Both the position numbers and the translations under genes were made by a program. A DNA stretch of 63,340 nucleotides, the filler included, from Perkinsus chesapeaki ATCC PRA-425 (taxonomy: Eukaryota > Protista > Perkinsozoa), in NCBI GenBank assembly GCA_013115145.1. It is 15 parts of 15 records of this genome, joined end to end, with 100 filler letters (N's around TTAATTAATTAA, not from the genome) between each part and the next. Parts side by side here need not be neighbours in the genome. Positions count along the whole stretch, not along the records: positions 1 to 22,790 come from JAAPAO010000572.1; 14 more parts are not named here. One strand, written 5' to 3'. The notes beneath the pieces are model-generated. The model saw only the letters and a program-made list of their open reading frames with translations. It was not told the DNA's origin and did no database searches. This document shows positions 3,856-22,890 of this stretch, piece after piece; the stretch's first letter is position 1, and every line of letters starts with the position of its first letter.

Positions 3856-3933
3856 ATTGCAATGAATGCAATCAACGGACTGATGGGGGGTGACGTGACA
3901 TCATGTAAGGATGGAGCGCGGGCGCCAGCGACA
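3856..3933 (-). repeat. Start of the 3' LTR, matching the 5' LTR remnant at 8692-8769
   Basis: 77 bp with three mismatches to 8692-8768. Begins TGTCGCTGGCGC on the minus strand directly after the PPT. Confidence 0.75.
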
Positions 3934-3946
3934 CTCCCTCTCACCC
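3934..3946 (-). promoter_or_regulatory. Polypurine tract of the Gypsy element
   Basis: Minus strand GGGTGAGAGGGAG immediately 5' of the TG that starts the LTR repeat. Confidence 0.65.
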
Positions 3947-4109
3947 GGAAAAGAAAGTGAATCAACGGCCGGTCATCAGCCTGATCCGATCAGGTGCTAC
4001 GTACAGTAGGTGGGATCGAGGCAGCCGGTAAATTCCGAACTGCGGTAGGAGAGATATACTTCAAGTGGTGTAGATGGATTCACGCTTAGTGGACCGACCA
4101 TTAGTTATA

Positions 4110-4537
4110 CAGTCCTCCAAATAAACTTAGAATATTTTGAAATAATATCGTTACTTCACAGCGGGAACGAGTTTAGTGCTCATTTTCGGATATGTTATGC
4201 ATATCCGTTTGGCTTTGATAAGCGTTTTCTTTTCGGGAGTAACGTTCTTAGTACGGGCCATTAAGGAACCAGAAGTGAAGAAATCACTGACAATCATGCT
4301 TTTCTGGTGACTATTCGCCCGCTTACGAAAATATTCTAAGTTAATTTGGCAATTCTGGCACGCGCAAAATTTTCGCTCGCCCATATATCAGTAACTAGGC
4401 ATGAAACGGTTACAATATTTTGACAAGTGGGTCTGAACTACCATATGCATAACATATCCGAAAATGAGCACTAAACTCGTTCCCGTTGTGAAGTAATGAT
4501 ATTATTTCAAAATATTCTAAGTTTATTTGGAGGACTG
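4110..4537. mobile_element. MITE, Tc1/mariner-like (95-bp TIRs, TA target duplication)
   Basis: TIRs 4110-4204 and 4443-4537 (CAGTCCTCCAAATAAACTTAG..., 2 mismatches), flanked by TA at 4108-4109 and 4538-4539. Interrupts the integrase C-terminus. Confidence 0.9.
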
Positions 4538-4539
4538 TA

Positions 4540-7500
4540 GCAATTTCGTAGACCCGAGGGGAAACCACACGGACAATTCGACAAGGATGAAAGGGACGAC
4601 AGTACTTCCGTTGCTTGCCGAAGCGACGAACCAACCAAAGTTCGTCAACATCGGGGAGACGTCCGGAACGGAGCCGTGGCAAAGAGGGCACAGGCGTAAC
4701 CGAAACATCGGAATCGGTGACAAGATCAGCAAGCTCTTCTGGAGGACGGAAAATAGGGTCAACTGTAGGGTAAGGCCAAGCAGGGAAGGTAAACACCAAG
4801 GAATGAGGAGTTCGACCAGTTCGGCGAGTAACATCGGTGTTGAACATAGAGGTAGCTTGAGCAATGATTGTCTTGAAACTGCCGAAAGTCAAAGGGGTAA
4901 TGCGAGCGTAAGCGCTCATTGAACTCGATGTGCACGCTCAACCTTGCCATTGGACCAAGAACTCTCGACAGGAGAAGGCACCGAAGAAGCTCGCATCCAA
5001 TTTAACGTAGAGAGAAACTCAGCTGACGTAAATTGGGAGCCTCCATCATGGTAGACCCTCCGCGGAACCGTATTGAAGCACTCGAATACGGACCGCAACG
5101 AGGCGAAAGTAACTTGAGCGGTAGGCATAGATTTGGTGACACGAGTAAGAAGATAACCACTAAAGTTATCGACAAGGGTAACCCCATACAGCTCGTATTC
5201 CTTGTAAGGTCCCACAATATCCATATGAACACCTACCCAGGGGGAAAAGCACGGGGAAGCTCGGGGCCCGAGCCTCGGGCCTATCAGATAAGCCAGCATC
5301 CACTGCTGCTGACATGGTAACCTTACTCGTAGTCTACGAGTCGTAGAGCAAGTAGGACAAGAGCGAACAAAGTCACGACAAAACGCTCGCAAGGCAGGGA
5401 ATACAACGAGCTCACGGAGGCGGTCGTGTAGCGCGGGACTACCCTCATGCTGATGGAGGGCACGAGCAAGGCCAGTCAACAGCTGCTTATCATGGACCAC
5501 TAGACGCCCCTGTGCATCCCGCTCAGGCTGAACAGAGAGACTGCCAAGAAATGCAGTCAAACAGGAGTGGGTAGGTAAGGAAGGACCAACATCACGAGGA
5601 ACGCAATATTTGGGGATCCGACTCAGCGGATCCGCAATATTAGAGGCACTGTCGACATGGACAACAGTGATATCCAAACGAAGAGCGGTAGCCGTTTCCC
5701 GGAGAACGCGGAGTCGGTTCTCAACAAGGGTAGCATTGAGGCCCCCAACAGCGCGCCGATGTTTCTGAAGGTTACGAGTGACCCAAGAAACCGCACTGGA
5801 ATTATCACAACAAATGGTCAAGGGCAAACGGGAGGCCCAAGAAAGGGCACGAATGTATTTCTCGACGAGCTGCAAGCCCGTAACGAGCGCGTCGAGTTCG
5901 GCCAGGTTTATATGGCGATGATCGCCCGGCTTGCGAAGGTGCGTGCCATCTTCAACAATAACAAATCCAATGCGCAAGACAGAACCATAGGCGTACTTGC
6001 TACTATCAGTAAAAAGGACCCATGGATCTGTAGGACAGTACTGGCAGGACCCATGGATCTGTAGGACAGTACTGGCATGTCCCATGCGCAGTATCGCCGG
6101 ATTCGAGGAGAGCAGCTTGCAACGCGTGGCACGCGGAAAGTTGGTGATCATCCAAAGGGGAATCCCACTGCGCGGAAGTTCCATCATGGCGGACGCATGC
6201 CAGTCGTTTCAGGGCCGAAAAAGCAGCTCTAGGCCAGCCGACAACAGGATGGTGCGCCACATATTTTCCTGCCCACTGATGAATGCCACGGCGAGTGGGG
6301 ACCTCCAAAGTGGGAACGACACCTCGACGATGCCACTGCCCACTCGAATCACACTGCAAGCCTAGCACGCGGCTAGTAAGGAGGGGCTCGGGCTCCTTAG
6401 TAGGGAAGTTCCCTAAGGGAACCCGTTGGAGGACAAGATGTCCCGAACGTACTGCAGTAACTCCCGAGGGAGTACTATATCGTCGAGGTACTTGTCAAGC
6501 TTGCTGCGAACCGATCACAGAATACGATCGAGACATACCTCGAGGCATTTCGGAGAAATGCTGAGCCCGAAGAGCAAGCGCAACATGCGAAACCTTTCTG
6601 GGCGCTTCAAACGGAGGCGTAGACCTAGATAAAAAGTTTGTGGCTCAAAAACGCGTATTTGGAGAAACGCCTTTTTCAAATCCAGGAGGAAAAAATCTTC
6701 CGGATTGCCGGGGAAAGCACGCCAGCGCCGGAGGTGCTCGGGGCAGGCGACTGGGCCGTCGCGCAATTCGTTGGGTAGCTACGTATACGATCATTCAACC
6801 ATTTCAGATCGATGCAGGGCCGGACCGGAGTGGTGACCTTATGTTCTTGGGGTACTAAGACAAGTGGGCTGGTTGCCTGGAGGTCAGGAAGGTCAGTGGG
6901 TACCAGCCAACCTGCGGTAATCCATTCCTCAACAACCGACTGCCATTGACCGGCAAGGTGAGGAGGAAATTTCGACTCGACATTGTAACCCGGTATCATG
7001 ATGTGGCGAGACGGAACATCGTTGAGCCATTTCTGGCGAAGAATGAAATCGCTTGTCTCGACATTGTCATGATTTGACTTTGTTCATGATGTTGTCGAGT
7101 CGACAACATCATGAACAAAGTCATACCCACGAAGGCTCCCGATTTCGAGGGAAAGAGTCACAAACTTGAACCCCAACGGCCTGGGGCGGTTGGGGAGGGG
7201 ACAACGACAAACACACAGGCCGGGCCTGCGGAAGAGCAGAAAAATCCCGATGCAAAGGAAACGAATAGAATGGATGGCCATCGGAAGTAAAGGAGAGGGT
7301 AACTCCCCCATGGGCCCGAATGAAATCGAGCCCAAGTAGGCCACTAAGCCGTAGACCCGACACCAGGGGAAATGAGGACGCGATTCCCCAACGGGGTAAG
7401 GTAACACCGAGTATGTCTAATTGACCTGCGCAAAGCTGTACTGGCAGTTTGCCGGAAATGCCTTGTAGGCTGGAAAAGTGGCCATCAGAACGATCGGCAG

Positions 7501-7711
7501 ACGCGGTCGCTGTTGACGCGTCGAAGGTGCTCAGGGAGCAGCCGGAGTCTAAGAGAAAAAGACGGGTATCAACATCCTCAATTACAACTAACGGGCTCAC
7601 CTTAGACGGACGACTCGCCTTGGAGCAAACATTGGCCTTATGGCCACCTTCCCCACATTTGAAGCAGACCACCGGGCTACTGCTATCGCCTTGGAGTACA
7701 GACTGCATCAA
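4540..7711 (-). pseudogene. Gypsy gag-knuckle/pol, frameshifted
   Basis: CFKCGEGGHKANVC knuckle; LLDSGCS protease; LDLKKAFLQI, FGL and YLDD (~6478-6489) RT; LFTDSSKYAYG...NIADPLSR RNase H; H..H..CPTC, DIVGP, DGGSQF and ERAH integrase. Split over several frames. Confidence 0.92.
6016..6077. repeat. 31-bp tandem duplication that frameshifts pol
   Basis: GGACCCATGGATCTGTAGGACAGTACTGGCA occurs twice. Removing one copy joins HGTCQYCPTDPWV to LFTDSSK in frame. Confidence 0.9.
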
Positions 7712-8672
7712 AGAGAGTAACTGATGAGCGGGTGAACTGCGCCCGTGACGACCTTTACCGCGGCCTTTCCCCTTTCCACCAGAAGAGAAACCACCAAGGC
7801 CGGGACCTTGGTGGCGAGTATACTATACTCGGTATAGGGGCCATGACGATGGGTAGTAGTCGATGAAGGGGTGGAATGAGCAACCATGCTCATCTCAGTA
7901 GGATCGTCATGCTCATCCTCAAACAAAGGACGGCAAATTTCGATACTCTCTACTAGAGTGATACGGCCATCAGGATGTTGAGACGGAACTTGTGAGAAGG
8001 CGTGCTTAACTTGGGCAGTCTTAGGAAGAGAGCTCCAGAGAATACTGGCGGCCACACAATCTCTGTCACGAGAGGTCAAGAACGGCCAATCTAGCTCAAG
8101 ACCACTCCGCGATACGGCTAGCAACATCGTCAATTTGAGTAGCACCAACCTCAAACTGTAATATGCGAAGTTTGCGGACAGCTTGGCTAGGTGTAAGCCC
8201 AAAAGCCTTGTCTAATGCAGACCAAATCTCCGTAACACGCCATCGCGGGGGTTTGCATGGTAGTCGACAATGCGAGCAGCATTATCAGTCAGAAATGCCC
8301 GGAGCTTATTCAGAGTTGTGGGCCACGTCCAACGTTTAACAGCGGCAAACGCGGTAAGTCTCCGCTTCCATTCAGTGAGGCTAATATCACGCTTGTTGCC
8401 GCTAAAGCGCTCAAGCTGTAGGGCCTTATCAGAGTTATCACGCTCGGCAATTGCATCTTCTGCGGCGCCTGCAGCCGCAAGGACACCACCTCCACCTGGA
8501 GGATCCTGCACACCGGCAGGGTCCGGGGGTCAGCTCCCACTGGGGGGAGTTCTGGAGGATCAACAACCTCATCAACCTCACCAGCCATAAAGGCATAAGC
8601 AACCTGGGGTCTGGCTACCATGTCGTCGGCATCGCCGGGGAACCCGAAATCCCCGATTGACGAACTTGACAT
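7708..8672 (-). pseudogene. Gypsy gag, frameshifted
   Basis: ATG at 8672 (MSSSSIGDF...). Gag-like LERFSGNKRDISLTEWKRRL...WTWPTTLNKLRAFLTDNA lies in an adjacent frame. Confidence 0.75.
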
Positions 8673-8769
8673 GAGGCGGAATATGGATAAGATTGCAATG
8701 AATGCAATGAACGGACTGATGGGGGGTGACGTGACATCATCTAAGGATGGAGCGCGCGCGCCAGCGACG

Positions 8770-10920
8770 ATGAATGAGATGGAACTGATAGCATCTCATG
8801 TAATGATTGACACTGATAATGCTACTGACCTAGAGATGATGATCGAGGCTCTCAAGCCTCAGTATAAGGGCCGAGAGTTTATGTAAGGTAGTTTATGCAG
8901 ATCGTGGGTGCTGTTCCAACGGTGAATACACTAAGTTGTTCGGTCGCATAAATGACAGTGCAGAGGTGGAATTAGATCTTTTTATTGGACACGTCGTATC
9001 GAGCAGTATGTTCGTGGATACCACCCTATCCGATCGTCGTTCTTCTCCGCACTACGCCAGTGTGTCTTCACTATCAGCCGTGGTGATGAAGAACTAGCAC
9101 TCAGTGCTATACGAAGTACTGGTAGGTGGGTGGAAACTCTTCACTGGAAAGCCTCAGCAGACGACAATACAGTCGTTACGTGCGCAAGGTGATTCCTGAA
9201 CCTATGTTAGTCCGAACTAGGCTGGAGGCCTTTCATAAGTACTACACTCGTTTGGATGCTCAGCTCAAGAATATGGGTGAAGGTTTTTTCTAGGAAACCC
9301 TAGCGTAGTTATCGTAGGTAGTTATCGTTGCGATAATCCGGCAAGAAAGGCCAGCTTCGGTCTCGATTATGAAGCCGACTGACACCAGTTCAAGCTCTTG
9401 AGCCACGTCGTTGAGGAAGGTGCTTTTGACATGGCTGATCCCAAGTTACTCGAAGAGAGTAATGTCAGCTCGTCTACAGGTCCTGTAGACCGATTCTCCG
9501 TTGGAACTCCTGTAGTACAGGAGTTCCAACGGATATCGAAGAATCGGATAGTGATACGGAGTCTATTTGGTTTGGAACTGAGGGTACAGATGAATTAGAT
9601 ATAGGTGAGACTCTCGGAGCAGAGGCTGAGGCGGATGTAGAGCCTACACAGCCATCGAGCTCAAGTCAGCAAGATGCATCTCGCATCTCGGATTTACGGC
9701 GCCAGTCAATCAAGTTCCGTGAGTCCATATTCAAGACCCAGAGTCCGTTATCGAACACACGCTCAGCAACGCTATTCCGTCAACTCGACGCCAAGTATCA
9801 ATTCTTAGATGCCGCAGATCGGGCTGTCCGCATTTGGGCAGAATTTGAGCTTCAGAGAAATGTGGATGCGACAGCCACATCTTCGAGAGCTGGTGCTTAG
9901 CCGGCCTCGGAAAGGATCGTGGGGCATACACCCCACTACTATCACGTGGGGCATAAAGGCTGTGCGTAGCCTCTCGAAAGAAAAAGACGCTGCCGATGCC
10001 TCAGGCGGGGTCCCACTATTCCGTCCGTAACTTCTCTGTTCGACGACGTAACTGGTGAATATAGTTTCGACCCTGAGCAGGGGAACCTCGACCGCGACTC
10101 GCGGTCCGCGAGGCTGAACATTCCGGAGTTCGGCATCCGAACAGGCATCCCCAAGTGTCGAAGTGCCGGGGTGTTCTAGCGGAGAATCTGTGTGGCGCTC
10201 GGTAGCTCTGAATGTTCAGAGTATGATGAAGAGGAAGGAGCTTCATATTACAAAGGGCGCCAAACGATGTGGAACGTGTGGCGTATCGTTCAACATACCC
10301 GACAGGCCACAAACACATCCGTGCATTCACGGTTACCGCATGTATCGCTACTGCCCACTGAGTCAGTGGCACTGACTACCCATAGCTCGACGAGTCGTCG
10401 ACGACGACTGGGTACTCGAGTTTGTCACTATACATCGAGCTTATCCTGCCGGGTAAGATTGAGGAATCTCAGAAAAGAAGGAGGGTTAAGGAGGGCTCAC
10501 TATGCTCTAGATGTGAGAAACCGTTATCCGCATGCCATTAACTGAACTTCAGTTACTGAAGGGGGTTACACAATATACTGGTGCCCTGATATGGACGGTC
10601 CTAGATGGTCATACGAAAAATGGAGGGACACGCCTGGCTTGGGGCCACGTGTTCTCGAAATGGTTCGCTTAAACGCCAGAAAGCATGATGCACGAGTGTT
10701 TGACGTCTTTTCTACTTATCCTGGATAAGTGGCAACAGTGGTAACACAACTCATGGATAAGTTATCCATGAGTTGTGTTACGCTAGTAACTGTTTCTATG
10801 TATCCTCTTCTCTTCCCTCTCTTTTTTCCCTCTTTTTCCCTCTTTTTCCCTTTCTTTTTCCCTTCTTCTTTCTTCCCTTTTTCTTTTCCCCCCTCTCTGG
10901 GTCAGGCTTTTCCCCCAGCC
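8770..10920 (+). mobile_element. Dada-like DDE transposon remnant, copy 1 (transposase pseudogene plus pyrimidine-rich 3' end)
   Basis: Manual translation across frameshifts: NEMELIASHVMIDTD...EALKPQYK, KVVYADRGCC (YADRGCC at 8894-8914), LDLF-(H)-WTRR (1-nt loss at 8984), GYHPIRSSFFSALRQCVF, YVRKVIPEP. After an internal deletion at ~9305 comes the same C-terminal region as ORF 19429-20913. These match my recollection of Dada/DUF6729-type transposase motifs. Confidence 0.7.
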
Positions 10921-10926
10921 AGCCAG

Positions 10927-10958
10927 GCGTGACAGGCAGGAATACTAACCGCTATACT
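10927..10958 (-). pseudogene. tRNA-Asp(GTC) fragment (D arm and anticodon arm)
   Basis: Reverse complement AGTATAGCGGTTAGTATTCCTGCCTGTCACGC matches tRNA-Asp at 22721-22790. Confidence 0.85.
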
Positions 10959-11272
10959 CTCGGAGTAAATGAAGATAAGTCGATTTGCAACAACGCGGGA
11001 AAATTTCCGTGCCAAGCCGTAGCATAAACACACATGATCACTTATTGTAAGATCGAAAATCCAACTCCACCAACTAGAGAGATCGTCCTAGTGCAGTAAA
11101 TGTACACCCCCGGTGCCCCCTGCTCAATGTTGGTCGAGTCTTCCTCGTGAAAAGCCTAAAAGGGCCTTGCGAGTGTGCCCGTGATTCACGCGTCATTGCA
11201 TCCTCTCAACATTGTTCAAGGGTAGGAGGGATCACTTACTATTTGACAGGTCTAAAGCTCATATTATCGTCA

Positions 11273-11362
11273 GGGGGACTAGGCTAGTCCGACTAGCTCA
11301 AATGGTAGAGCGTTCGCTTAGCAAGCGAGAGGCATCAGGATCGATGCCCGGATGATGCCCCA
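11273..11362 (+). pseudogene. tRNA-Ala(AGC) pseudogene
   Basis: Matches 21483-21555 but has a 14-nt insertion at the start of the A box and a rearranged 3' acceptor strand. Confidence 0.88.
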
Positions 11363-11617
11363 TTTTAAGCACTATAGATTTAAAATTGTCTACGGTACAG
11401 AGTGAACCGTGAACAACTTTTTTGGTTTTTTGGGGTCAGCAGGGGCAGCGTTAGCTCCTCTGTCCATTGGTGAAGAAATTCTGTGTATATCTGCACTAGT
11501 TATAGATCTACCTACCCCGGGAGATCGTGATGTGGGGGTCACTTAGCGCGCGTCAAAAAAATACGGAAAAATGCAGGGCGTGGGATTCGAACCTCCGAGG
11601 TTGCATCTGAATGACGT

Positions 11618-11865
11618 AGTACTAGTCCTAGTGTGGGTGACCTAGTACTAGTTACCAGTACTAGTCCTAGAGTGGGTGACCTAGTACTAGTTACTAGTAC
11701 CAGTCCTAGAGTGGGTGACCTAGTACCAGTTACTAGTACTAGTCCTAGAGTGGGTGACCTAGTACCAGTTACCAGTACTAGTCCTAGTGTGGGTGACCTA
11801 GTACTACTCCTAGTGTGGGTGACCCAGTACTAGTTACTAGTACTAGTCCTAGTGTGGGTGACCTA
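11618..11865. repeat. 39-bp minisatellite (~6 copies)
   Basis: GTGGGTGACCTAGTACTAGTTACCAGTACTAGTCCTAGA in tandem. The last unit is interrupted by the MITE and resumes at 12575. Confidence 0.95.
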
Positions 11866-12574
11866 CCGCTCGTTCAATAAACCTATTTTGGAACTAAGAA
11901 TCGATTTTGGAAACGATTTTGAAAAATCTTGTTCCAGGAACGGGTCCTGGAATCGATTCCGAACGTTTTCAGAAACGATTCTGAGTGCGTTCAAAAAGGC
12001 TCGCGTGCGATTCTGGAAGTGATTCTGAGCCGCCAGATTTCAAAATCGCTTTGACCGGTTCTAAACGTTTCGTTGCACGTGAAAGAGCGCACTCGCTACA
12101 GTAATTGAAATTCAATTATTGAATAAAGTCGAATAAAAGTTGTAGCGCAGGATCGAACTCTCAACCGTTGGGATTCGAAACTAAACTCCTAACCAATTAG
12201 ACTAGATTAACGAAAAAATTCTCTGAACCTGTGAGAATCCCCCAAATGCGTTAGGCAAATTGCCCAGAGTATCCTTAGACTAAGGATACTCTGGGCAATT
12301 GAAGCACTAAGGACCTTAGTGCTTCACGAGTTCGACTCCCGCACGTGACACTTTTATGTAGTTCACGAATTCGGGTTCTGGAAACATTTCTGGAATCGTT
12401 TTTGAAAATCGTGTCTATTGAACGCTGGTCAGAATCGTTGCCAGAATCGATTCCAAAAACGTGTTCCAATTCTCAAAATTGCGTTGATTGAACAGGTTCC
12501 CAAAATCGTTTTTCAAAATCGATTTTCAGAAACGATTCCAGAATCGCCTAAGCCATCTTTTATTGAACGAGCGG
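11866..12574. mobile_element. MITE with 16-bp TIRs and 3-bp TSD (PIF/Harbinger-like by TSD length)
   Basis: CCGCTCGTTCAATAAA (11866-11881) and TTTATTGAACGAGCGG (12559-12574). CTA duplicated at 11863-11865 and 12575-12577. Many subterminal GAATCGATT/AAACGATT motifs. Confidence 0.85.
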
Positions 12575-12863
12575 CTAGTACCAGTACATTGAGTACTAGG
12601 TCTTGCGCTTCGCTCCGCTATTAAAAGCGCTCGCCCGAACACATTTTTTACGTGTCTAAAGCTGGTGTTAATCTACAAAGTAATACTTGAAGTAGTACTG
12701 CGGTATACTCTGCAGTTATATGTAGTACTCGTACTGGATATTACTTATTAAGGGGGCGACCTGGTACTAGTATTATTATGGAAAAGGAAGAGAGGAAGTC
12801 TCAGTGATGATTGTCTTGCCACGCAGGAGGGTTCTGGAATGGAGGAGGAAACTATGCAGGTAA

Positions 12864-13115
12864 GAGTCCTTGGGAATTAGGAGGAGGGGTGACCTAGTAC
12901 TAGGATTATCAGTGCTTGGGAATTCTAATTATTATTGAGGGGGTGACCTAGTACTAGTATTATTAGTCCTTGGGAATTCTAATTATTATTGAGGGGGTGA
13001 CCTAGTACTAGTGTTATTAGTCCTTGGGAATTGAATTCTTTACTGGGGGGTGACCTAGTACTAGTATTATCAGGCCTTGGGAATTCTAATTATTATTGAG
13101 GGGGTGACCTAGTAC
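12864..13115. repeat. ~54-bp minisatellite (~4.5 copies)
   Basis: GAGGGGGTGACCTAGTACTAGTATTATTAGTCCTTGGGAATTCTAATTATTATT units. Confidence 0.9.
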
Positions 13116-13203
13116 TTAGTAGTGCTAGTAATTACTGAATTACTACAGTACCAATACTCGTTCCAGGGGTGCTTGGTAGTTTAATGGTACTGTAGTACTG
13201 GTG

Positions 13204-13205
13204 GT

Positions 13206-13273
<68 letters not shown>

Positions 13274-13303
13274 CAGCAGCAGTAGTAGTAGTTGTAGTAG
13301 TAC
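13204..13303. repeat. (GTA/GCA)n microsatellite
   Basis: Direct reading of the sequence. Confidence 0.97.
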
Positions 13304-13709
13304 TGCAAGTACCATTACTCGTACTAGTACGGTTTAGAATAGTTTATAATTTCATTTATTTCGTCTTGAATTGTGGATACCACAATTTCGCAATTGACTA
13401 GTGTCGTCGGTAATTTAACAGATATAATGGTAGAGTTGAAGCGAAGTAAGTTGTTAAAGGGGAGTATGTAAAGGTAAACTCTTGTGCAGGTATCGATAGT
13501 TGTAAAGGAACGATTGAAATGCATGGAGTTCCAACCCGAAAACGCAAGAGAGAAAGTGTCAGTGATGATTGTTTTACCCGTAAGGCAACAGTCAGCCCCC
13601 AGCGCGTTGAGTTCGAAGGAAGTCCGCCCCCGGGTAAGACGGGAGATAACTTATTACTAGTAAAATGTTATGGATTGTAGTTAAATTCGGGTTTTCGTAG
13701 AACTAGTAC

Positions 13710-14060
13710 GGGTAGTGATCGTAGAACTTCCAGTACTAGTAACCGGTAGTGATAGTAGTACTTCCAGTACTAGTAACCGGTAGTGATAGTAGAACTTCCA
13801 GTACTAGTAACCGGTAGTGATAGTAGTACTTCCAGTACTAGCAACCGGTAGTGATAGTAGTACTTCCAGTACTAGTAACCGGTAGTGATAGTAGTACTTC
13901 CAGTACTAGTAACCGGTATTGATAGTAGTACTTCCAGTACTAGTAACCGGTAGTGATAGTAGTACTTCTAGTACTAGTAACCGGTAGTGATAGTAGTACT
14001 TCCAGTACTAGTAACCGGTAGTGATAGTACTTCCAGTACTAGTAACCGGTAGTGATAGTA
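13710..14060. repeat. 34-bp minisatellite (~10 copies)
   Basis: CCAGTACTAGTAACCGGTAGTGATAGTAGTACTT; AACCGG recurs at 13741, 13775 and 13809. Confidence 0.95.
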
Positions 14061-14212
14061 ACATGGCAGGCTGCCATTGGCAGCATAGTAATAAGTAACA
14101 TAGCTTGTAGTACTACCAGTGCTACAAGGTATATATTGGAGCCGAGCAGCTTTCCATAATACGAGAGCGTGTCTCACAGCCCATATGCATTTATTTCCTG
14201 TATATTATGTAG

Positions 14213-16928
14213 TTGGAAATCAATTTTTACATGCCAGTTAAAGAAGGCCATACCCGTGTTGTATGCGACATATGCGGAAAGGAGTATTGGAAGTATGCTC
14301 GATACAAGCACGCGTGCTACAGGAATCCTAATAGGGTTCAATGCCCTATATGTGGAGAATTCTTCGTAGCGCTGCACCGACACATCAATCGGGAGGTATG
14401 TAAAAGAAATGCACAAAAGAAGAAAGCCCAAGAAGGTGGTCCATATTTATAGTATTTATCGGGTTCCGATGCGCTCCCTTTCAGCTCGCAAATCGGAACC
14501 CATTACCCCTTTTGGCGAACATATCACCCCTCTTGAGGAACTGATTCAAACTTCTGAGGAACCAAATGAGCCTTCTAAGGAACTTATTACGCCTTTTGGT
14601 AAAGCGGCTCGTGATGCTGTTGCATTGCAGGTGGACGTTTCGTCTACTACAGCCTCTGCTCCTGTCATTACTACCCCACCTGGGGAATCTATTACCCCAC
14701 CTGGGGAAGGTACTACCCCCCCTGAGGAATCTATTACTTCTCCTGAGGAATCTATTACTCCATCTGGGGAATCTATTACCCCACCTGGGGAAGGTACTAC
14801 CCGCCCTGAGGAATCTATTACTCCACCTGGGGAATCTATTACTCCACCTGGGGAATCTATTACCCCACCTGGGGAAGGTACTACCCCCCCTGAGGAATCT
14901 ATTACTCCACCTGGGGATATTACCCCACCTGGGGAATCTATTACCCCTCTTGAGGATCCTATTGAGTCTCTCGAAGAACCTATTGAAACAACTACGGTTG
15001 CTATTCCTACGTCTTCTAGTAGTGCGCCACGATTGGATCGACTCGTATCAAGTATCCCTCGTGCTACTCCAGTCGGTGGGGCCACCATTACGTCATTCGG
15101 TGCTCCTAGCGGTGGACCTGATGTGGATTCGATCGTCATACCAATTTATCCGCGTACATTGCTAAGTGTACATGGGACTTTCGATGGCTGGCGAATTGGT
15201 GGTGGGGCGGGGCCAATTAAAGGTGTTGATGGTACGCTGGTGTGCATCGCGACGGAACCATATGTTCTGATGGCGAAAGCTAATCAGTTCGACAATCTTC
15301 GCTTTTGCGATGGCCTTTACAATTATGGAATGACCGCCGTGTGGAATGATAACTTTGGAACTTCGGTTGTGCTTGGAACTATATCTGTTTCTACCAGAGT
15401 ACTCGTCCAGGTGTTGGATGACATATATCCGCCAGATGAGTATCTTCTGTTATGCCGTTATGGACAGAAGCTGAAAATTATGCGGGAGCTTATCAATTAC
15501 TATGATTCCTTAGTGCGGGTTGACCATCGAACACTATCAAATGAATCTAGTCTGGTCAAAACAATTTACGATATAGGCCGCAACTTCGATGACACTGCGA
15601 TTTGCTTACTGACCACCACCAACCCCAATGTTAAGCCGTGGAATTTGCTATCAGTTCTTGGAGGAGCGAACTCCGGTTCATTAAGATGGTCCGAAAAGGT
15701 GTATATTCCTGGTGCAGTATCGTGCGAGACTAATGTTGTTTTATATCCCCGATTGGTGCATTTTCTTAAGGGTGTTATGGGTACCAAGAAATATGTCCCT
15801 TTAAAATACCAAGCTTTCAGGAAGCTTGTAAATGATACCAAAAAACTTTTGCGGAAGATGCGTGAAGCTCCCGAACGGTGGTTATATGGTTATCGCCTTG
15901 AATATAGCCTTAGCATTGAAGCTAAAGAAGGTGTGAAATTAAGTACCGCTTACAATGCTGTTGGGCCCCGGTTATCACTGCATTATCATCCTGATGTTGC
16001 CGTATGCCGTGTTGATCCCAAAGAGTACATGAGCTACATTCAACTGATGTTGGATGTAGCGGATCAGTCCGGCGTTTATTCTGGACCGAACGCCGAGCCA
16101 TTGAGTAAGAGGGCAAAAGCATTCGCAGCTTTTATGATTAATACTCTGGGGAACACTTCCCCTCATATCCAATCTCTTGAACGTGAAGGTAAATTCGTCT
16201 ACTATGAGTACCTAAAGTCTTTCGCGATGACTAGGGGGAAGCTGCATAACCCGGATCCAGACCATCTTCAACCAGATAGAGATGAATGTGTGGATATGAG
16301 AAACAACGTCAAGTGGCGAAAGCCACTAACTAAAGCGGATACCCCTTTGTCAGTGGCCTACTCGATTAAAAGGTTTGGTCCTGTTGGTAAGACCAAGTGT
16401 TCTAAAAGCCATCCCAGCTTCTTCTCGGCTATGAGAGAAATTTGGGATGCCTTTTCCGAACATTGGAGAGATAGAGTTGTATTAACGAATGGGAGGAACG
16501 ATACCCCAGAATCTGACCCCTTCAAAGATATTCCTGGTGGTTATCCGGAAGCGTATGGCACAATCTCACGGCATTTTCAACACCCATCCAGGAAACGGGC
16601 GCGTTCAAAACACGCATTCTGCGGAAGGGTCGAGAGAGGGTGCAAATTTAAGGAGACCACAGCTGCAAAGGAGGGGAAATCCACTGCGCCCGCTTCTGCT
16701 GCCATTACTGCTGCTGTCAATATTGCTGCTGCTGATGCGAGGAGGGATGATGAGGTAGAGGATGAGGTAGAGGATAAGGGAGAGGATGAGGTAGAGGAAG
16801 ATTTTGGGATATGGATATGCTGGAATGGATACTCGGCCAGTGAGCTGCGACGATTGATCAAGATCTTTTTCCTACTTTTTTCCTACTTTTTCAGGATGCA
16901 GAGCTTGCGATACCCCCTCTTCAGTTAA
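14213..16928 (+). CDS. Uncharacterised zinc-finger / Pro-Thr-Glu repeat / unknown-domain protein (spliced; 5' exons further upstream)
   Basis: Exon 14213-14435 follows an AG acceptor and encodes CDIC...HAC and CPIC...H...C fingers. A 49-nt GT...CTTTCAG intron (14436-14484) joins it in frame to the uninterrupted 839-codon ORF. Acidic tail. Confidence 0.75.
14685..14950 (+). repeat. 21-bp coding tandem repeat (ESITPPG-type heptads)
   Basis: GAATCTATTACYCCACCTGGG variants within the long ORF. Confidence 0.95.
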
Positions 16929-17319
16929 GGCTGCAGTGGAGAATGAATAAGGCATTGGATGCTCGCGCGTCAGCCACGTACAGCCATGGATGTGCTAGTG
17001 CCTCAAAAAGGTGTTAAGTACTATATTTTAGTGTTCCAGGTGATCGCGAAGTTGATGAATGAGTGTGTCACACACTGTGTGTGAGTGTATTAATATGCGT
17101 CTGTGTTGTATGCGTATCATCTTATTTATTAGTTTCTCAGATTATACAGATACATGGAATTGTGTTTCAAAATGTCCAAATGTACTACCATTAGTTGCAC
17201 ATACTTGCACAATTTGGTGCGCAACTAATCTGAAGCATCTAGTTCCGTAATAAGCTGCTGTGGGGCTACAACTGGCTTAAGATAGAGTTTAAAATGCGCA
17301 AACAGTTGACCCTCAACTT

Positions 17320-17690
17320 TACTAGGTCACCCATTCACTGCAGTACAAGTTCCCTACATTACCAGTATCAAGCCAGGACTATCCTGGGCGGGTACTAGGT
17401 CACCCATTCGCTGTAGTACAAGTTCCCTACTTTTTAACCAGTATCAAGCCAGAACTATCCTGGGCGGGTACTAGGTCACCCATTCACTGTAGTACAAGTT
17501 CCCCACATTACATTACCAGTATCAAGCCAGAAATATCCTGGGCGGGTAGTACGTCACCCATTCACTGTAGTACAAGTTCCCTACTTTCTAACCAGTATCA
17601 ATCCAGAACTATCCTGGGCGGGTACTAGGTCACCCATTGGACTGCAGTACAAGTTCCCTACTTAACCAGTATCAAGCCAGAACTATCCCC
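17320..17690. repeat. 73-78-bp minisatellite (5 copies)
   Basis: Units start TACTAGGTCACCC at 17320, 17393, 17469, 17547 (variant) and 17623. Confidence 0.95.
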
Positions 17691-17714
17691 TAAGAATCTC
17701 CTAAGAATCCGTAA

Positions 17715-17887
17715 GGTGCCATTGGTTAGGATTGAGGTCTGTCGTTCTGAAGGTCAAGGTTCGATTCTCGGTGAGAAATTGAGAAAATGCCAACGGAAGA
17801 AAGACTGTCGTCCCTCGGTAGAATATGCAAGCTGGTTCGGATGGACATTCTACATAGTTTCTGCCCGACAATGCTCCAAATAATAAA
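17715..17887. other. tRNA-derived (A/B-box-like) segment with conserved hairpin, copy 1
   Basis: Near-identical to 22548-22720. GGTTCGATTC B-box-like motif. Does not fold as a cloverleaf. Confidence 0.55.
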
Positions 17888-17904
17888 TTCCACGGCCGAG
17901 AATT
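17888..17904 (-). pseudogene. tRNA-Asp 3' fragment
   Basis: TTCCACGGCCGAGAATT, identical to 22721-22737 and in the same flanking context. Confidence 0.8.
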
Positions 17905-19415
17905 AAACGTAAATGATTTTGGGCTTGATTACGCTTTTGCCCTTCATGGACAAGAGTTGCTTGAACATGTGACACAGGAAAATGCCGAAGCTATGGTTGT
18001 CATGAGATCTACCAAGGAACAGCCGTCGTCATCTAGCAGCTCAACAACAGTCCCAGCTACAGCAAATTTCGATAATATAGAGTCAGAACCTCTGGATGGC
18101 GATGAACTCGATATTGAGTCCTGGGGGCTTGGTGAAGAAGATGATCTCGTAGATGTAGAGGCTCTTGCAGAAATTATGTGCAGTACTGGGGATGCGGAGA
18201 CGGTGGGTGGACCGAAAGAGGATTTACGCCGTCAGGCGGTGAAATTCCGGGGGTCGATTTTCAAAGTTCAAGTTGCCCATTGGCTAACGCTAGATCGGCC
18301 TCACTTTTCCGGGAGCTCAACAAGAAGTACAACTGCTTGGGCATTACTGATCGTTCAGTTCGCATTTGGGCAGACTTTGAACTTCAACGTAACATCGAAT
18401 CACAGAATTACGAAGCTTCTCCAGGAGAAGCTCTCCTGGGGTTCTGCCTGCTCGTGAAAGGATAGCTAAAACAAGTATCACTTGGTGTATGAAAGCCTTG
18501 CGTCAGCTCGAAACATCAGAGGATGGGAAAAATGTGAGTGGAGGTGGCCCCGTCGTCGAGCGCGCCGACTTCGCGGTGGAAGGTAAAGAATTCTAATACA
18601 AGCCTGCAATTGGTTCAGTTCGGGTGAATGATGCGGACAATACTGATGGCGAAGATGCGGAAGCTTTGATGATTGATACTGCGCCTGCGACTCGTGAAAC
18701 ACTCTGGAGGGATACAGCGTTAGAGATCCAACGAAGGATGCGGCTTAAACTGCTCCATGTTCCACGGGGCGCAAAAACTTGCTCCAACTGTGCAGTCCCC
18801 TTCCAGGTCACCGCCAGCGTTGGCGTTGGCGTCTTGGCAACAACACAGAGTCACCCTTGCATTCAGGGGCACAGAACGTATAGATACTGCCCTTTGACTA
18901 CGCATCCAGAAGTTAACGGCTTTATGAGCCTCGAGGATTACAAGAGACTCATACTCCCACAGAATCAACTCAAAACTCAAGCCCGCAAGCGAGCCAAGGA
19001 AGAAGCACTATGCAACAGATGTGGAGAGCCGCTAGCAGACACACATCGTCCACTGAGTTCGAAGTTCGAACAACTATACAGTTTATTGGTGTCCTTCACT
19101 CGACGGTAGCCGTTGGACATTTCAGAAATGGCGAGATACACCGGGGCTTGGACCGAGAAGGTTGACTATGGTCGAACGTAATGCAGCCGGCGGTACCAAG
19201 CGGATGAGAACAAATTGAATCTTATATCAAGCATGATATTAATGAAGATAAACACTGACTTGCGTAGAGTCTATCCGAGGGTATAATAGTCGTTCTTTTT
19301 CATAGTAAATTCTTCTTCCTCCTTCCCTCTCTTTTTTCCTTGTTTTTCTCTTTTCTTCTCTTTTTTTCCTTCCTTTCTTTTTCTTCTCTCTTTCCCTCCT
19401 TTCTCCTTTCCAGCC
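17905..19415 (+). mobile_element. Dada-like transposon remnant, copy 2 (diverged family, frameshifted)
   Basis: DFGLDYA, DLRRQAVKFRGSIFK, CSNC...HPCIQGHRTYRYCP and CNRC motifs homologous to ORF 19429-20913. Ends in a pyrimidine tract plus CCAGCC like copies 1 and 3. Confidence 0.65.
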
Positions 19416-21103
19416 CGCGTGCGGGACAGTGCAGAAGTCCTACAAGTCATCCAGAATGAGCGCCAACCTTGTAAACGCAGTTGTCCATGAGCTAGCGGCT
19501 CACTGGAACCGGCGTGCACTTCAAAAGATTGGCAAGGACGCATGTCCTATCACAGATCTCCGCGATTGGACAGATTTTCAAGGCACCATGGGCAGTATGT
19601 TGCCGAACCAACAGCAAGGAGGTCTATCCGCCGGTAGTTATCGTAGCGATAATCCAGCAAGCAACGCCAGCTTCGGTCTCGATTATGCAGCTGACTTACA
19701 CCAGTTCAAGCTCTTGAGCCACGTCGTTGAGGAAGGTGCATTTGACATGGCTGATCCCAAGTTGCTCAAAGGGGGTAATGTAAGCTCGTCTACAGGAGCT
19801 CCAACGGATGTCGGAGAAACGGATAGTGATACGGAGTCTATCTGGTTCGAAACTCAGGATATAGATGAATTAGATATAGGTGAGACTCTCGGAGCAGTGG
19901 CTAAGGCGCATGTGGAGCCTTCACAGCCATCGAGCTCAAGTCAGCAAAATGCATCTCGCATCTCGGATTTACGGCGCCAGTCAATCAAGTTCCGTGAGTC
20001 CATATTCAAGACCCAAAGTCCGTTATCGAACACACGCTCAGCAACACTATTTCGTCAACTCGATGCGAAGTATCAATCCTTAGATGCCGCAGATCAGGCT
20101 GTCCGCATCTGGGCAGAATTTGAGCTTCAGAGAAATGTTGATGTGATGGCCACATCTTCGAGAGCTGGTGCCTTACCGGCCTCGGAAAGGATCGTGAAGA
20201 CTAGTATCACGTGGTGCATAAAGGCTGTGCGTAGCCTTTCGAAAGAAAAAGACGCTGCCGATGTCTCAGGCGGGGGTCCTACCATTCCGGCCGTAACTTC
20301 TCTGTTCGACGACGTAGCTGGTGAATATAGCTTCAACCCTGAGCCGGGGAATCTCGACCGCGAGGCTGGCCATTCCGAAGAGGCATCCCCAAGTGTCGAA
20401 GTGCCGGTTTGTTCTAGCGGAGAATCTGTCTGGCGCTCGGTTGCTCTGGATGTTCAGAGTATGATAAAGAAAAAGGAGCTACATATTCCAAAGGGCGTCA
20501 AACGATGTGGGACGTGTGGCGTACCTTTCAACATACCCGACAGGCCACAAACACACCCGTACATTCAAGGTTACCGCATGTATCGCTACTGCCCACTGAC
20601 TACCCATAGCTCAACGACTGGGTACTTGAGTTTGTCACAGTACATCGAGCTTATACTGCCGGGTAAGATTGAGGAATCCCAGAAAAGGAAGAGGGTTAAG
20701 GAGGGCTCACTTTGCTCAAGATGTGAGAAACCGTTATCCGCTGGGCACATGCCATTAACTGAAGGGGGATATACAGTATACTGGTGCCCTGATATGGACG
20801 GCTCTAGATGGTCATACGAAAAATGGAGGGACACGCCTGGCTTGGGGCCACGCGTTCTCGAAATGGTTCGCTTGAATGCCGGTGGAAGGACGAAAAAACG
20901 CCAGAAAGCATGATGTACGGGTGTTTGACGTCTTTTTTACATATCCATGCGCTGTGTTACGCTAGTGACTGTTTCTATGTACCCTCTTCTCTTCCCTCTC
21001 TTTTTTCCCTCTTTTTCCCTCCTTTTTTCCCTTCTCCTTCTTTCTTCCCTTTCTCTTCCCTTTTTCTTTTCCCCCCTCCCTGGGTCAGGCTTTTCCCCCA
21101 GCC
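19416..21103 (+). mobile_element. Dada-like transposon remnant, copy 3 (5'-truncated)
   Basis: Contains the 494-codon ORF, then a pyrimidine tract and CCCCCAGCC abutting the tRNA-Asp 5' half. Confidence 0.7.
19429..20913 (+). CDS. C-terminal half of a Dada-type transposase with two CCHC-type zinc motifs
   Basis: Open 494-codon frame. HELAAHWNRR near the start; CGTC...H...YRYCP and CSRC...GH...YWCP; basic tail. In copy 1 the homologous region is linked to DDE-core motifs. No catalytic core in this copy. Confidence 0.65.
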   Translation: MQKSYKSSRMSANLVNAVVHELAAHWNRRALQKIGKDACPITDLRDWTDFQGTMGSMLPNQQQGGLSAGSYRSDNPASNASFGLDYAADLHQFKLLSHVVEEGAFDMADPKLLKGGNVSSSTGAPTDVGETDSDTESIWFETQDIDELDIGETLGAVAKAHVEPSQPSSSSQQNASRISDLRRQSIKFRESIFKTQSPLSNTRSATLFRQLDAKYQSLDAADQAVRIWAEFELQRNVDVMATSSRAGALPASERIVKTSITWCIKAVRSLSKEKDAADVSGGGPTIPAVTSLFDDVAGEYSFNPEPGNLDREAGHSEEASPSVEVPVCSSGESVWRSVALDVQSMIKKKELHIPKGVKRCGTCGVPFNIPDRPQTHPYIQGYRMYRYCPLTTHSSTTGYLSLSQYIELILPGKIEESQKRKRVKEGSLCSRCEKPLSAGHMPLTEGGYTVYWCPDMDGSRWSYEKWRDTPGLGPRVLEMVRLNAGGRTKKRQKA

Positions 21104-21148
21104 CTCCTGCGTGACAGGCAGGAATACTAACCTCTATACTACCGCGGA
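21104..21148 (-). pseudogene. tRNA-Asp(GTC) 5' 45 nt
   Basis: TCCGCGGTAGTATAGAGGTTAGTATTCCTGCCTGTCACGCAGGAG, identical to the intact gene where they overlap. Confidence 0.9.
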
Positions 21149-21482
21149 ACTAATATTTTATTTTTCGTCTCGGAGTGAATGAAGATAAGTCGATTTGCAA
21201 CAACGCGGGAAAATTTCCGTGCCAAGCCGTAGCATAAACACACATGATTACTTATTGTAAGAGCGAAAATCCAACTCCACCAACTAGGGAGATCGTCCTA
21301 GTGCAGAGAATGCACACCCCCGGTGCCCCCTGGTCAATGTTGGTCGAGTCTTCCTCGTGAAAAGCCTGAACGGGCCTTGCGAGTGTGCCCGTGATTCACG
21401 CGTCATTGCACCCTCTCAACATTGTTCAAGGGTAGGAGGGATCACTTGCTATCTGACAGGTCTAAAGCTCATATTATCGTCA

Positions 21483-21555
21483 GGGGGACTAGCTCAAATG
21501 GTAGAGCGCTCGCTTAGCAAGCGAGAGGCACCGGGATCGATGCCCGGGTTCTCCA
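21483..21555 (+). tRNA. tRNA-Ala (anticodon AGC)
   Basis: 73 nt; acceptor GGGGGAC/GTTCTCC with G3:U70; anticodon arm CTCGC-TTAGCAA-GCGAG; A and B boxes; followed by TTTT. Confidence 0.97.
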
Positions 21556-22525
21556 TTTTGAGCATTATAAATTCAAAATTGTCTACGGTTGCGTGAACAC
21601 AATAGCATCACATTCTTAAACTTAGCTGCGCACTCTCCTCCATTTCGGTAGCTCTGGGTGCGCATACCCGTAACCTCTATCCTGCCGGATTTTATTCTCC
21701 TAACGCGCACTTGCTTATCGCTATGCCGTCTCTTTTGCGCACTGTACTACACTGTAGTGTAGACAGTGACTGTAGCGCCTCAGCCATCACATCACACCAA
21801 CTGTATCATCACGCCTCCCGTAATTTCGAATTCAACCGACCTTGGACCAGCTTAACTCTCTCGTACACACAACCCTCCGTAATCGACCACGGTGCGATAC
21901 TATCAATTCAACTCAATCGGGAAGAAAACGGTACGACAAGCAATAAGTGTAGTGTGACATGCCAGCTTGGAAAAGCCTCGTAAACTGGAAGTGAATCACC
22001 GCATCAGCATGCCTTCATTCAGCGATATTCACCTTCGCACAACCTTTGATGGCGGTTCCTATCGTCGTAGGAATGGTGACACGGTGACAGCAATTTATAC
22101 TAAAATAAATTATATATTAATTATTCTTTACAATACTTGATTGAATCACCAGTTGCCATCCTGTCCATGCCCCCCAGCTTTTCTGCATTCAAATTTACTG
22201 TGAGGGTGGAATCATGACGGTGATTGAACGTCTGAAAACGGATGGGCTGTCACCACTTTGCTCGAGAAGTAGTCGTGGGAAATCTGGTATGGCAATGAGT
22301 TTTTCGGTGCGCGCGGGAATTTAATGCTACTGAACGTGCTTCAACATCGACTATTATCTGCCACCGTAGCCTCTCAGGATCAAGGCAAATACATGATCCT
22401 CTTGCTTTCGGAAGCCGCTAGGCAGTCCCAGCAACGGCCTTCATGAGAAGAGAGTAAAATTTGTGACTCGCCGGCAGTAGAAGTTGTGGATTTCAGAACT
22501 GCTTTTTAGTACCTCACAAACTGAG

Positions 22526-22720
22526 GGAGTACTGGACCAGTACTACTGGTGCCATTGGTTAGGATTGAGGTCTGTTGTTCTGAAGGTCAAGGTTCGATTC
22601 TCGGTGAGAGATTGAGGAAATGCGAACGGAAGAAAGACTGTCGTCCCTCGGTAGGATAGGCAAGCTGGTTCGGATGGCCATCCTACATAGTTTCTGCCCG
22701 ACAATGCTCCAAATAAGGAA
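22526..22720. other. tRNA-derived (A/B-box-like) segment with conserved hairpin, copy 2
   Basis: TGGTGCCATTGG A-box-like and GGTTCGATTC B-box-like motifs; paralog of 17715-17887. Confidence 0.55.
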
Positions 22721-22790
22721 TTCCACGGCCGAGAATTGAACTCGGGTCTCCTGCGTGACAGGCAGGAATACTAACCTCTATACTACCGCG
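22721..22790 (-). tRNA. tRNA-Asp (anticodon GTC); first 2 nt lost in the gap
   Basis: Anticodon arm CCTGC-CTGTCAC-GCAGG, T arm CCGAG-TTCAATT-CTCGG, acceptor (TC)CGCGG/CCGTGGA. Confidence 0.95.
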
Positions 22791-22890
22791 NNNNNNNNNN
22801 NNNNNNNNNNNNNNNNNNNNNNNNNNNNNNNNNNTTAATTAATTAANNNNNNNNNNNNNNNNNNNNNNNNNNNNNNNNNNNNNNNNNNNN
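22791..22890. other. Artificial contig spacer (first of 14)
   Basis: N run with TTAATTAATTAA. Others at 23907-24006, 26028-26127, 38286-38385, 41384-41483, 44703-44802, 46033-46132, 47280-47379, 48740-48839, 51275-51374, 54132-54231, 55350-55449, 59962-60061 and 62046-62145. Confidence 0.99.

Follow-up and report, generated by a model that had tools for sequence, protein, structure and literature searches.

To our knowledge, Dada elements are the only DNA transposons that home strictly into small-RNA genes, and they have been discussed as a basis for targeted gene delivery. Defining features of the superfamily include 6-7-bp duplications of the target site, a lack of terminal inverted repeats, short sub-terminal inverted repeats that recur in the target, an N-terminal CCCC zinc finger and a C-terminal CCHC one. 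In Dada transposases the DDE core is accompanied by a C/DxxH motif; some lineages have, in addition, an exonuclease between the second D and DxxH (Kojima and Jurka 2013, PMC3706591). The families described from Perkinsus marinus target genes for tRNA-Ile, -Leu, -Gly and -Tyr; the target-site duplication (TSD) of Dada-tIA, tIB, tY and tG comprises tRNA nt 8-13, in the A box, and Dada-U1 elements end in a CT that was left out of the TSD by the authors (PMC3706591). Fish Dada-tD/tV insert antisense into the anticodon arm of tRNA-Asp-GTC, with the TSD CGCGGG (Kojima 2022, PMC8869645). Here we analyse positions 8770-21148 of a 63,340-nucleotide stretch of joined genomic parts from Perkinsus chesapeaki ATCC PRA-425 (assembly GCA_013115145.1), the whole of which is referred to as the window and provides the coordinates used below. 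This region probably contains decayed copies of an undescribed Perkinsus family of the Dada superfamily of DDE transposons, whose members insert in antisense orientation into tRNA-Asp(GTC) genes, at the 3' margin of the anticodon stem, so that the 5' part of the tRNA is retained to nt 45, or only to nt 43 should CT belong to the element's own end. The initial annotation of the region had proposed a new target specificity. That proposal stands within the genus, as none of the P. marinus families uses tRNA-Asp (PMC3706591), but not for the superfamily, as nearly the same site is already used by fish Dada-tD (PMC8869645).

Transposase remnants in the window

Three homologous plus-strand stretches, at 8770-10920, 17909-19415 and 19416-21103, were delimited by self-comparison and by tblastn with the open reading frame (ORF) of the third copy as query, which matched copy 1 at E = 1e-122 and copy 2 at E = 2e-82. 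As first noted, all three are related and end alike, the 3' end of each being made up of some 100-170 bp of CT-rich sequence and a final CCAGCC. The same copy-3 ORF finds, at E = 2e-142, a 703-residue partial protein of Perkinsus olseni (P0002, encoded at locus L001), which serves below as the reference for residue numbering. The parts of the region on which the argument turns are as follows.

8770-10920, plus strand: copy 1 (lineage B), a Dada transposase pseudogene that begins shortly before the second catalytic D and extends to the 3' terminus; profile match at 8956-9189, E = 3e-8
10921-10958, minus strand: hexamer AGCCAG (10921-10926), then tRNA-Asp nt 40 to 9 (10927-10958), following the CCAGCC of copy 1 at 10920; 97% identical to 22753-22784
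10959-11396, plus strand: outer flank of copy 1, about 96% identical to the copy 3 flank and including a tRNA-Ala pseudogene
17715-17908, minus strand: left half of a split tRNA-Asp gene, with 3' flank (17715-17887) and nt 72 to 52 (17888-17908); 94% identical to 22548-22741
17909-19415, plus strand: copy 2 (lineage A, nearer the P. olseni copy), 5'-truncated at about P0002 residue 277 and frameshifted; matches P0002 277-703 at E = 6e-133
19416-19428, no strand assigned: 13-nt joint CGCGTGCGGGACA of the copy 2 terminus to the copy 3 interior, by reading of the sequence only
19429-21103, plus strand: copy 3 (lineage B), 5'-truncated just after the catalytic E region, with a 494-codon open frame, 3' untranslated region (UTR), CT tract and terminal ...CTGGGTCAGGCTTTTCCCCCAGCC
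21104-21148, minus strand: right half of the split gene, tRNA-Asp nt 45 to 1; 43 of 43 positions (21104-21146) identical to 22748-22790 by BLAST; weak Rfam tRNA match at 21077-21148
22721-22792, minus strand: intact, unoccupied tRNA-Asp(GTC), the empty-site reference, cut by the edge of the piece (to 22790 within it); ARAGORN and Rfam

The three copies are decayed in different ways. Copy 1 has lost its E region through an internal deletion and carries frameshifts, stops and several 14-bp palindromic insertions. It keeps VVYADRGCC and LDLF; because a frameshift falls directly after LDLF, the H of DxxH is out of frame, and of the core motifs originally read there YADRGCC and LDLF are retained and the H is not. 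The open frame of copy 3 (19429-20913) represents the C-terminal half of the protein with two CCHC-type fingers. In copies 2 and 3 the E region lies upstream of the truncation points, so that no window copy has the full D-D-E triad and nothing here can move by itself. The frame of copy 3 stays open, and is annotated as a protein, though the whole catalytic core is missing; this open frame, together with an excess of synonymous differences from copy 1, leaves open either a recent truncation or some retained function of the zinc-finger half. The CT-rich tracts (10805-10896 in copy 1, 20981-21079 in copy 3, the tail of copy 2, and 2450-2550 of L001) lie just inside a conserved 40-bp terminus; viewed from the side of the tRNA promoter they are GA-rich and have no T runs. 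A related P. olseni element, at locus L003, has no such tract.

Membership in the Dada superfamily

When the window ORFs and P0002 were scanned against Pfam, no family was assigned to the transposase parts, and membership was therefore reached through homologs. P0002 is collinear with the part preserved in copy 1 (YKGRE..VVYxDxGCC..LDLFHW..RYVRKxIP) and with that preserved in copy 3 (from just after STSQLEGYH to the C-terminus), and it has the core motifs VVYLDKGCC, LDLFHW and STSQLEGYH. An exhaustive HMMER search with P0002 returned 418 proteins at E <= 1e-3, all aligned on its first ~235 residues. Proteins bearing DUF6729 and a DnaQ exonuclease insert were matched at E values from 1e-13 to 1e-24; among nine full-length matches that were scanned, DUF6729 was present in six, upstream of the matched region, and a DnaQ-type 3'-5' exonuclease in five, which agrees with the domain architecture published for Dada (PMC3706591). 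A profile of 648 positions, made from 52 such homologs of P0002, matched the L001 ORF at E = 5e-65 as well as copy 1 (listed above), and BLASTP aligned P0002 to a full-length P. olseni transposase, P0153, at E = 7e-23, with 25% identity over 405 aligned positions. The order of motifs, YxDxGCC / LDxxH / RYVRxxIP / GCLSD / S(T)SxxE..H / FGLxY / two CxxC..H..C fingers, parallels that of Dada-tIA, tIB, tL, tY, 2, 3 and 4_PMar (Dataset S1). The fingers, a C-terminal CxxC-x8-H-x12-C and a second CxxC..H..C upstream of it, occur in both the copy-3 ORF and P0002 as a residue pattern only, with no Pfam match. Homology of the predicted proteins to Dada transposases thus shows the window family to be of Dada type; the initial annotation of the remnants as Dada-like is borne out by the similarity to DUF6729/DnaQ proteins and by the motif order.

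The short motifs peculiar to this family are absent from all eight published P. marinus Dada proteins, which argues that it is a further family and not a known one. The nearest protein matches of P0002 are chytrid, stramenopile and metagenomic sequences, not fish. On the contigs of the nearest relatives outside Perkinsus (L006 and L007) no tRNA or other Rfam RNA was found. Word-index protein searches with P0002 and with its C-terminal 174 residues added nothing new, a metagenome scan for the 26-mer spanning the junction was blank, and a scan for P0002 relatives gave one doubtful match.

Junctions with tRNA-Asp

The terminus of copy 3, ...CCCCCAGCC, ends at 21103 and is followed directly by tRNA-Asp nt 45 to 1. 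On the far side of copy 2, the 173 bp preceding 17888 match the sequence 3' of the intact gene at 94% identity and lead into tRNA nt 72 to 52, a segment that reaches 17908 and not, as initially placed, 17904. The presence of nt 52-72 at 17888-17908 and of nt 45 to 1 from 21104 indicates that 17909-21103 is one 3.2-kb composite insertion in one tRNA-Asp gene. It comprises two diverged members of the family in tandem, with their transposase frames antisense to the tRNA. Only nt 46-51 of the split gene are absent; this is a loss, not a duplication. At 17908/17909 the 3' part of the tRNA runs into the interior of copy 2, in agreement with the earlier reading of the left junction as a deletion joint fusing tRNA to mid-transposase; every 5' junction in the window is either such a deletion joint or a retroelement insertion, and the left side of copy 1 ends at 8769, cut by a long terminal repeat (LTR) retroelement.

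Copies 1 and 3 had both been described as abutting the antisense 5' half of tRNA-Asp after nt 45. This holds exactly for copy 3, but at copy 1 the hexamer AGCCAG intervenes and the tRNA resumes at nt 40. The insertions fall at a fixed site in a multicopy small-RNA gene, at nt 45 for copy 3 and for the P. olseni element of L001 and near nt 40-45 for copy 1, albeit in a small sample. The 13-nt joint CGCGTGCGGGACA between copies 2 and 3 faintly resembles the target GCGTGACA, a resemblance not significant alone, and might weakly be read as a decayed piece of the tRNA-Asp target (GCGTG..GACA).

Taken at face value, these arrangements suggest a transposase that would recognise the tRNA-Asp sequence and join the conserved element terminus to it, as do other Dada families with RNA-gene targets. 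The tandem pair would have arisen when the same site, or a cassette next to it, was targeted again. A lineage-A element may have landed inside or beside a resident lineage-B element, with one or two subsequent deletions, a route for which the tandem Dada-U1A/U1B pairs reported in zebrafish offer a parallel (PMC3706591); or a deletion may have fused two neighbouring occupied cassettes. Later deletions and the insertion of the LTR retroelement would then have removed every 5' half.

Two lineages and probable repeated targeting

The P. olseni locus L001, which has an open frame of 761 codons, shows the same CT tract and then the identical junction, ...CTTTTCCCCCAGCC joined to CTCCTGCGTGACAGG, continuing through tRNA-Asp nt 1. 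P0002 resembles copy 2 (46-78% identity, depending on the segment) more closely than copy 3 (48%), which distinguishes two old lineages, A (copy 2 and L001) and B (copies 1 and 3). Protein identity between the lineages is about 50%, and both include an element that abuts tRNA-Asp at nt 45. Alignment of their 3' UTRs is confined to the terminal ~40 bp, which match at about 86% identity, a pattern that fits an element terminus kept by selection. The tRNA fragments beside the elements are nearly perfect, 43 of 43 (copy 3) and 44 of 45 (L001) positions being identical to the intact gene. Had a single old insertion been copied together with its tRNA fragment, the fragment would decay along with the rest. 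Intact tRNA pieces beside diverged lineages therefore favour repeated integration into live tRNA-Asp genes over one copied insertion.

Whether copies 1 and 3 are themselves independent is a narrower question, since they share flanking sequence that includes the following features.

11294-11351, beside copy 1: tRNA-Ala pseudogene, Rfam 25 bits, below threshold
21149-21589, plus strand: upstream flank of the split tRNA-Asp gene
21483-21555, plus strand: intact tRNA-Ala(AGC) within that flank; ARAGORN and Rfam

With gaps excluded, the element bodies of the two copies differ by 8.1% and their flanks by 4.2%. Differences in the coding region number 29, 32 and 60 at codon positions 1, 2 and 3 (7%, 7.5% and 14%; chi-square p = 7e-4), and the single changes comprise 40 synonymous and 45 non-synonymous ones; as third positions differ most, much of the divergence arose under coding constraint. 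The flank, moreover, is part of a multicopy tRNA-Asp/tRNA-Ala cassette, in which the 3' flanks of the split and intact genes are 94% identical, and a common flank is thus expected even for independent insertions. Two insertions of already diverged active elements explain copies 1 and 3 most simply, with a case for independence that is little better than even.

Several observations weigh against family-specific targeting of tRNA-Asp. Only three 3' junctions have been seen, and only two, those of the window and of L001, are clearly independent. Copies 1 and 3 have ~470 bp of flank in common beyond the tRNA, including the tRNA-Ala gene or pseudogene, and may go back to a single insertion that was duplicated along with its surroundings; gene conversion among tRNA cassettes could account for the lower divergence of the flank, and selection on the open frame of copy 3 after duplication for the codon-position bias. 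The junction of copy 1 has AGCCAG in place of CTCCT, and the terminus of copy 2 adjoins no recognisable tRNA. No 5' terminus, TSD or N-terminal half (the first D and the CCCC finger/DUF6729) of the family was found anywhere: a six-frame profile search of the window, L001 and L002 gave nothing N-terminal of profile position 337, where the L001 contig ends, and the N-terminal half, when sought to the left of the retroelement and in L002 with the 648-position profile and P0153, gave nothing better than E = 0.03. From the junctions at hand, targeting of tRNA-Asp by this family appears supported, but thinly.

Alternative origins of the copies

The most serious competing account is that of one ancient insertion beside a tRNA-Asp fragment, later spread by segmental duplication, in which case the P. 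olseni copy would be an ortholog and the family would have no target specificity. The flank of ~470 bp with its tRNA-Ala gene is indeed common to copies 1 and 3, in line with the single, segmentally duplicated insertion that had been named beforehand as a refuting outcome; all window copies are dead, and beyond the window just one further junction turned up. However, at that extra junction, identical in sequence, the L001 flank beyond tRNA nt 1 is unrelated to that of the window, and L001 keeps its long open frame. The lineages are as diverged as described above, with 3' UTRs that mostly resist alignment, yet the adjoining tRNA fragments are perfect. Divergence at third codon positions (14%) exceeds that of the flank (4%), and the cassette flank is itself multicopy, as 17715-17908 and 22548-22741 illustrate. 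We accordingly regard a purely duplicative history as unlikely. It is more improbable still that the 45-nt tRNA-Asp piece is not a target at all but a captured or transduced part of the 3' end of the mobile unit. Such a carried segment would explain why homology between L001 and copy 3 ends at tRNA nt 1, and the related P. olseni element at L003 does have a 35-40-bp tRNA-like segment at both of its ends; but nt 52-72, followed by 3' flank of the intact-gene type, lie on the far side of the composite, just as insertion into a gene predicts, and published Dada families behave as target insertion predicts (PMC3706591).

The absence of the 5' part from all three window copies, each with its 3' end kept, is also what one would see if the elements were copied out from the 3' end in the manner of non-LTR retroelements, and not moved by cut and paste. 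This we consider very improbable indeed: the encoded protein is a DDE transposase, with no reverse transcriptase (RT), the tail is a CT tract and not poly(A), and each truncation has a cause of its own, namely the LTR element at 8769 and the deletion joints at 17908/17909 and 19415/19416.

Retroelement, inverted-duplication footprints and neighbouring features

Further features of the window and of other loci are listed here.

3856-8768, minus strand: LTR retroelement with gag CCHC, RT region and integrase, outside the Dada family; rve, Integrase_H2C2 and zf-CCHC matches
762, 5259, 5326, 6401, 10091, 10355, 10387, 10540, 11276, 12103, 14063, 17062 and 22529: 22-bp inverted-duplication footprints in the window
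1464, 1508, 2399, 2464 and 3021 of L002, and 7303 and 7363 of L003: 22-bp footprints at other loci
7075-7123, 9497-9533, 10741-10781 and 12258-12300: near-perfect palindromes of 37-49 bp
14409-16928, plus strand: 839-codon ORF between Dada copies

The retroelement that cuts copy 1 has unusually short terminal repeats of 77 bp (3856-3932 and 8692-8768, 96% identical), with a purine tract adjoining the left one. No TSD was found at 3856-8768, which suggests a recombinant between two elements; such an origin would also account for the loss of the 5' half from copy 1. A reading of the repeat at 8692-8768 as transposase sequence was considered and rejected: the left copy has the purine tract beside it, the first-D motif fails to align, and an LTR fits better.

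The 22-bp footprints follow a simple rule, in which an 8-mer X is present as X[1-7], then the reverse complement of X, then X[2-8], amounting to a 14-bp insertion in which two 15-nt palindromes overlap. The window has 13 exact occurrences; 30 shuffled versions had none, and unit sizes of 6, 7, 9, 10 or 12 likewise gave none. The pattern occurs also at the Perkinsus loci L002, L003/L004 and L005, and is absent from L001 (2.7 kb) and from the non-Perkinsus contigs L006 and L007. Five of the footprints have an empty site, with the single X, in copy 3 or its flank, and one event of this type distinguishes two P. olseni element copies with 99.3% identity. The tRNA-Ala pseudogene at 11294-11351 is broken by one 14-bp insertion of this kind, its counterpart at 21483-21555 being intact. 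The footprints could be left by hairpin-type excision of an element with an 8-bp TSD, or by snap-back repair synthesis; we found no description of the pattern in the literature. Two of the longer palindromes, 9497-9533 and 10741-10781, are insertions in copy 1 relative to copy 3, and both start with the module of X[1-7] and the reverse complement of X, followed by filler and then by an inverted copy of the next ~20 nt.

The 839-codon ORF at 14409-16928 encodes tandem repeats of ESITPPGE type close to the N-terminus; a Pfam scan assigned it to no family, and none of the 22-bp footprints falls within it. It appears to be an ordinary host gene.

Relation to described Dada systems

The window family shares with the P. 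marinus elements (Dada-tIA, tIB, tY, tG and tL_PMar, and Dada-2, 3 and 4_PMar) its genus, an intron-less single ORF, the order of motifs through the second D, DxxH and E, two C-terminal CCHC fingers, and insertion that is specific, by family, to one kind of tRNA gene. It differs from them in using tRNA-Asp, after nt 45, in the antisense orientation. Compared by target gene, site and orientation only, it resembles instead fish Dada-tD/tV, which likewise insert into tRNA-Asp-GTC, in the 3' part of the anticodon arm and with their transposase running antisense, but in a host that is not a protist. In our own placement, the fish TSD CGCGGG aligns at nt 38-43 with CGCAGG of Perkinsus, and the window junction lies two nt further on; the two sites would be the same if the element's own end is ...CAGCCCT.

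A further point of comparison is the P. olseni element that encodes P0153 (L003/L004; 1091 aa, with a faint DUF6729), the transposase aligned above. This element ends in ...CACAGCC, followed by CTC..., which represents the antisense 5' part of a Pro-TGG-like tRNA gene cut at an equivalent position. It differs in its target, in its lack of a CT tract, and in having a tRNA-like stretch of 35-40 bp at both ends in place of a TSD of 6-7 bp, as seen at one locus. There, a direct repeat of tRNA-like sequence at L003 4284-4323 and 9946-9985 (the same locus in L004) brackets a full-length Dada-like element, the left side keeping tRNA nt ~72 to 8 and the right side nt 45 to 1 after ...CACAGCC. Either the repeat represents an exceptionally long duplication of the target, or the element carries a tRNA-derived segment at its 5' end. 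The tRNA-like gene of L003 was called by neither ARAGORN nor Rfam, and a composite rebuilt from its two fragments was likewise uncalled by ARAGORN. A broader proposal, which we put forward as tentative and on balance doubtful, is that a Perkinsus Dada clade ending in CAGCC inserts antisense at nt 38-45 of tRNA genes (Asp in the window, Pro-like in P. olseni) with the geometry of fish Dada-tD/tV, a geometry either ancient within Dada or evolved twice, and that this clade may, in place of a 6-7-bp TSD, generate or carry a target repeat of 35-40 bp.

Taken by itself, the result adds incrementally to a superfamily already described. The window family would add a target that is new for the genus, at a site unlike the A-box site of other Perkinsus families. 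Concrete test material is at hand in the 40-bp conserved terminus and in the P. olseni gene, which appears intact, and comparison with fish Dada-tD could help to show how these transposases read their targets.

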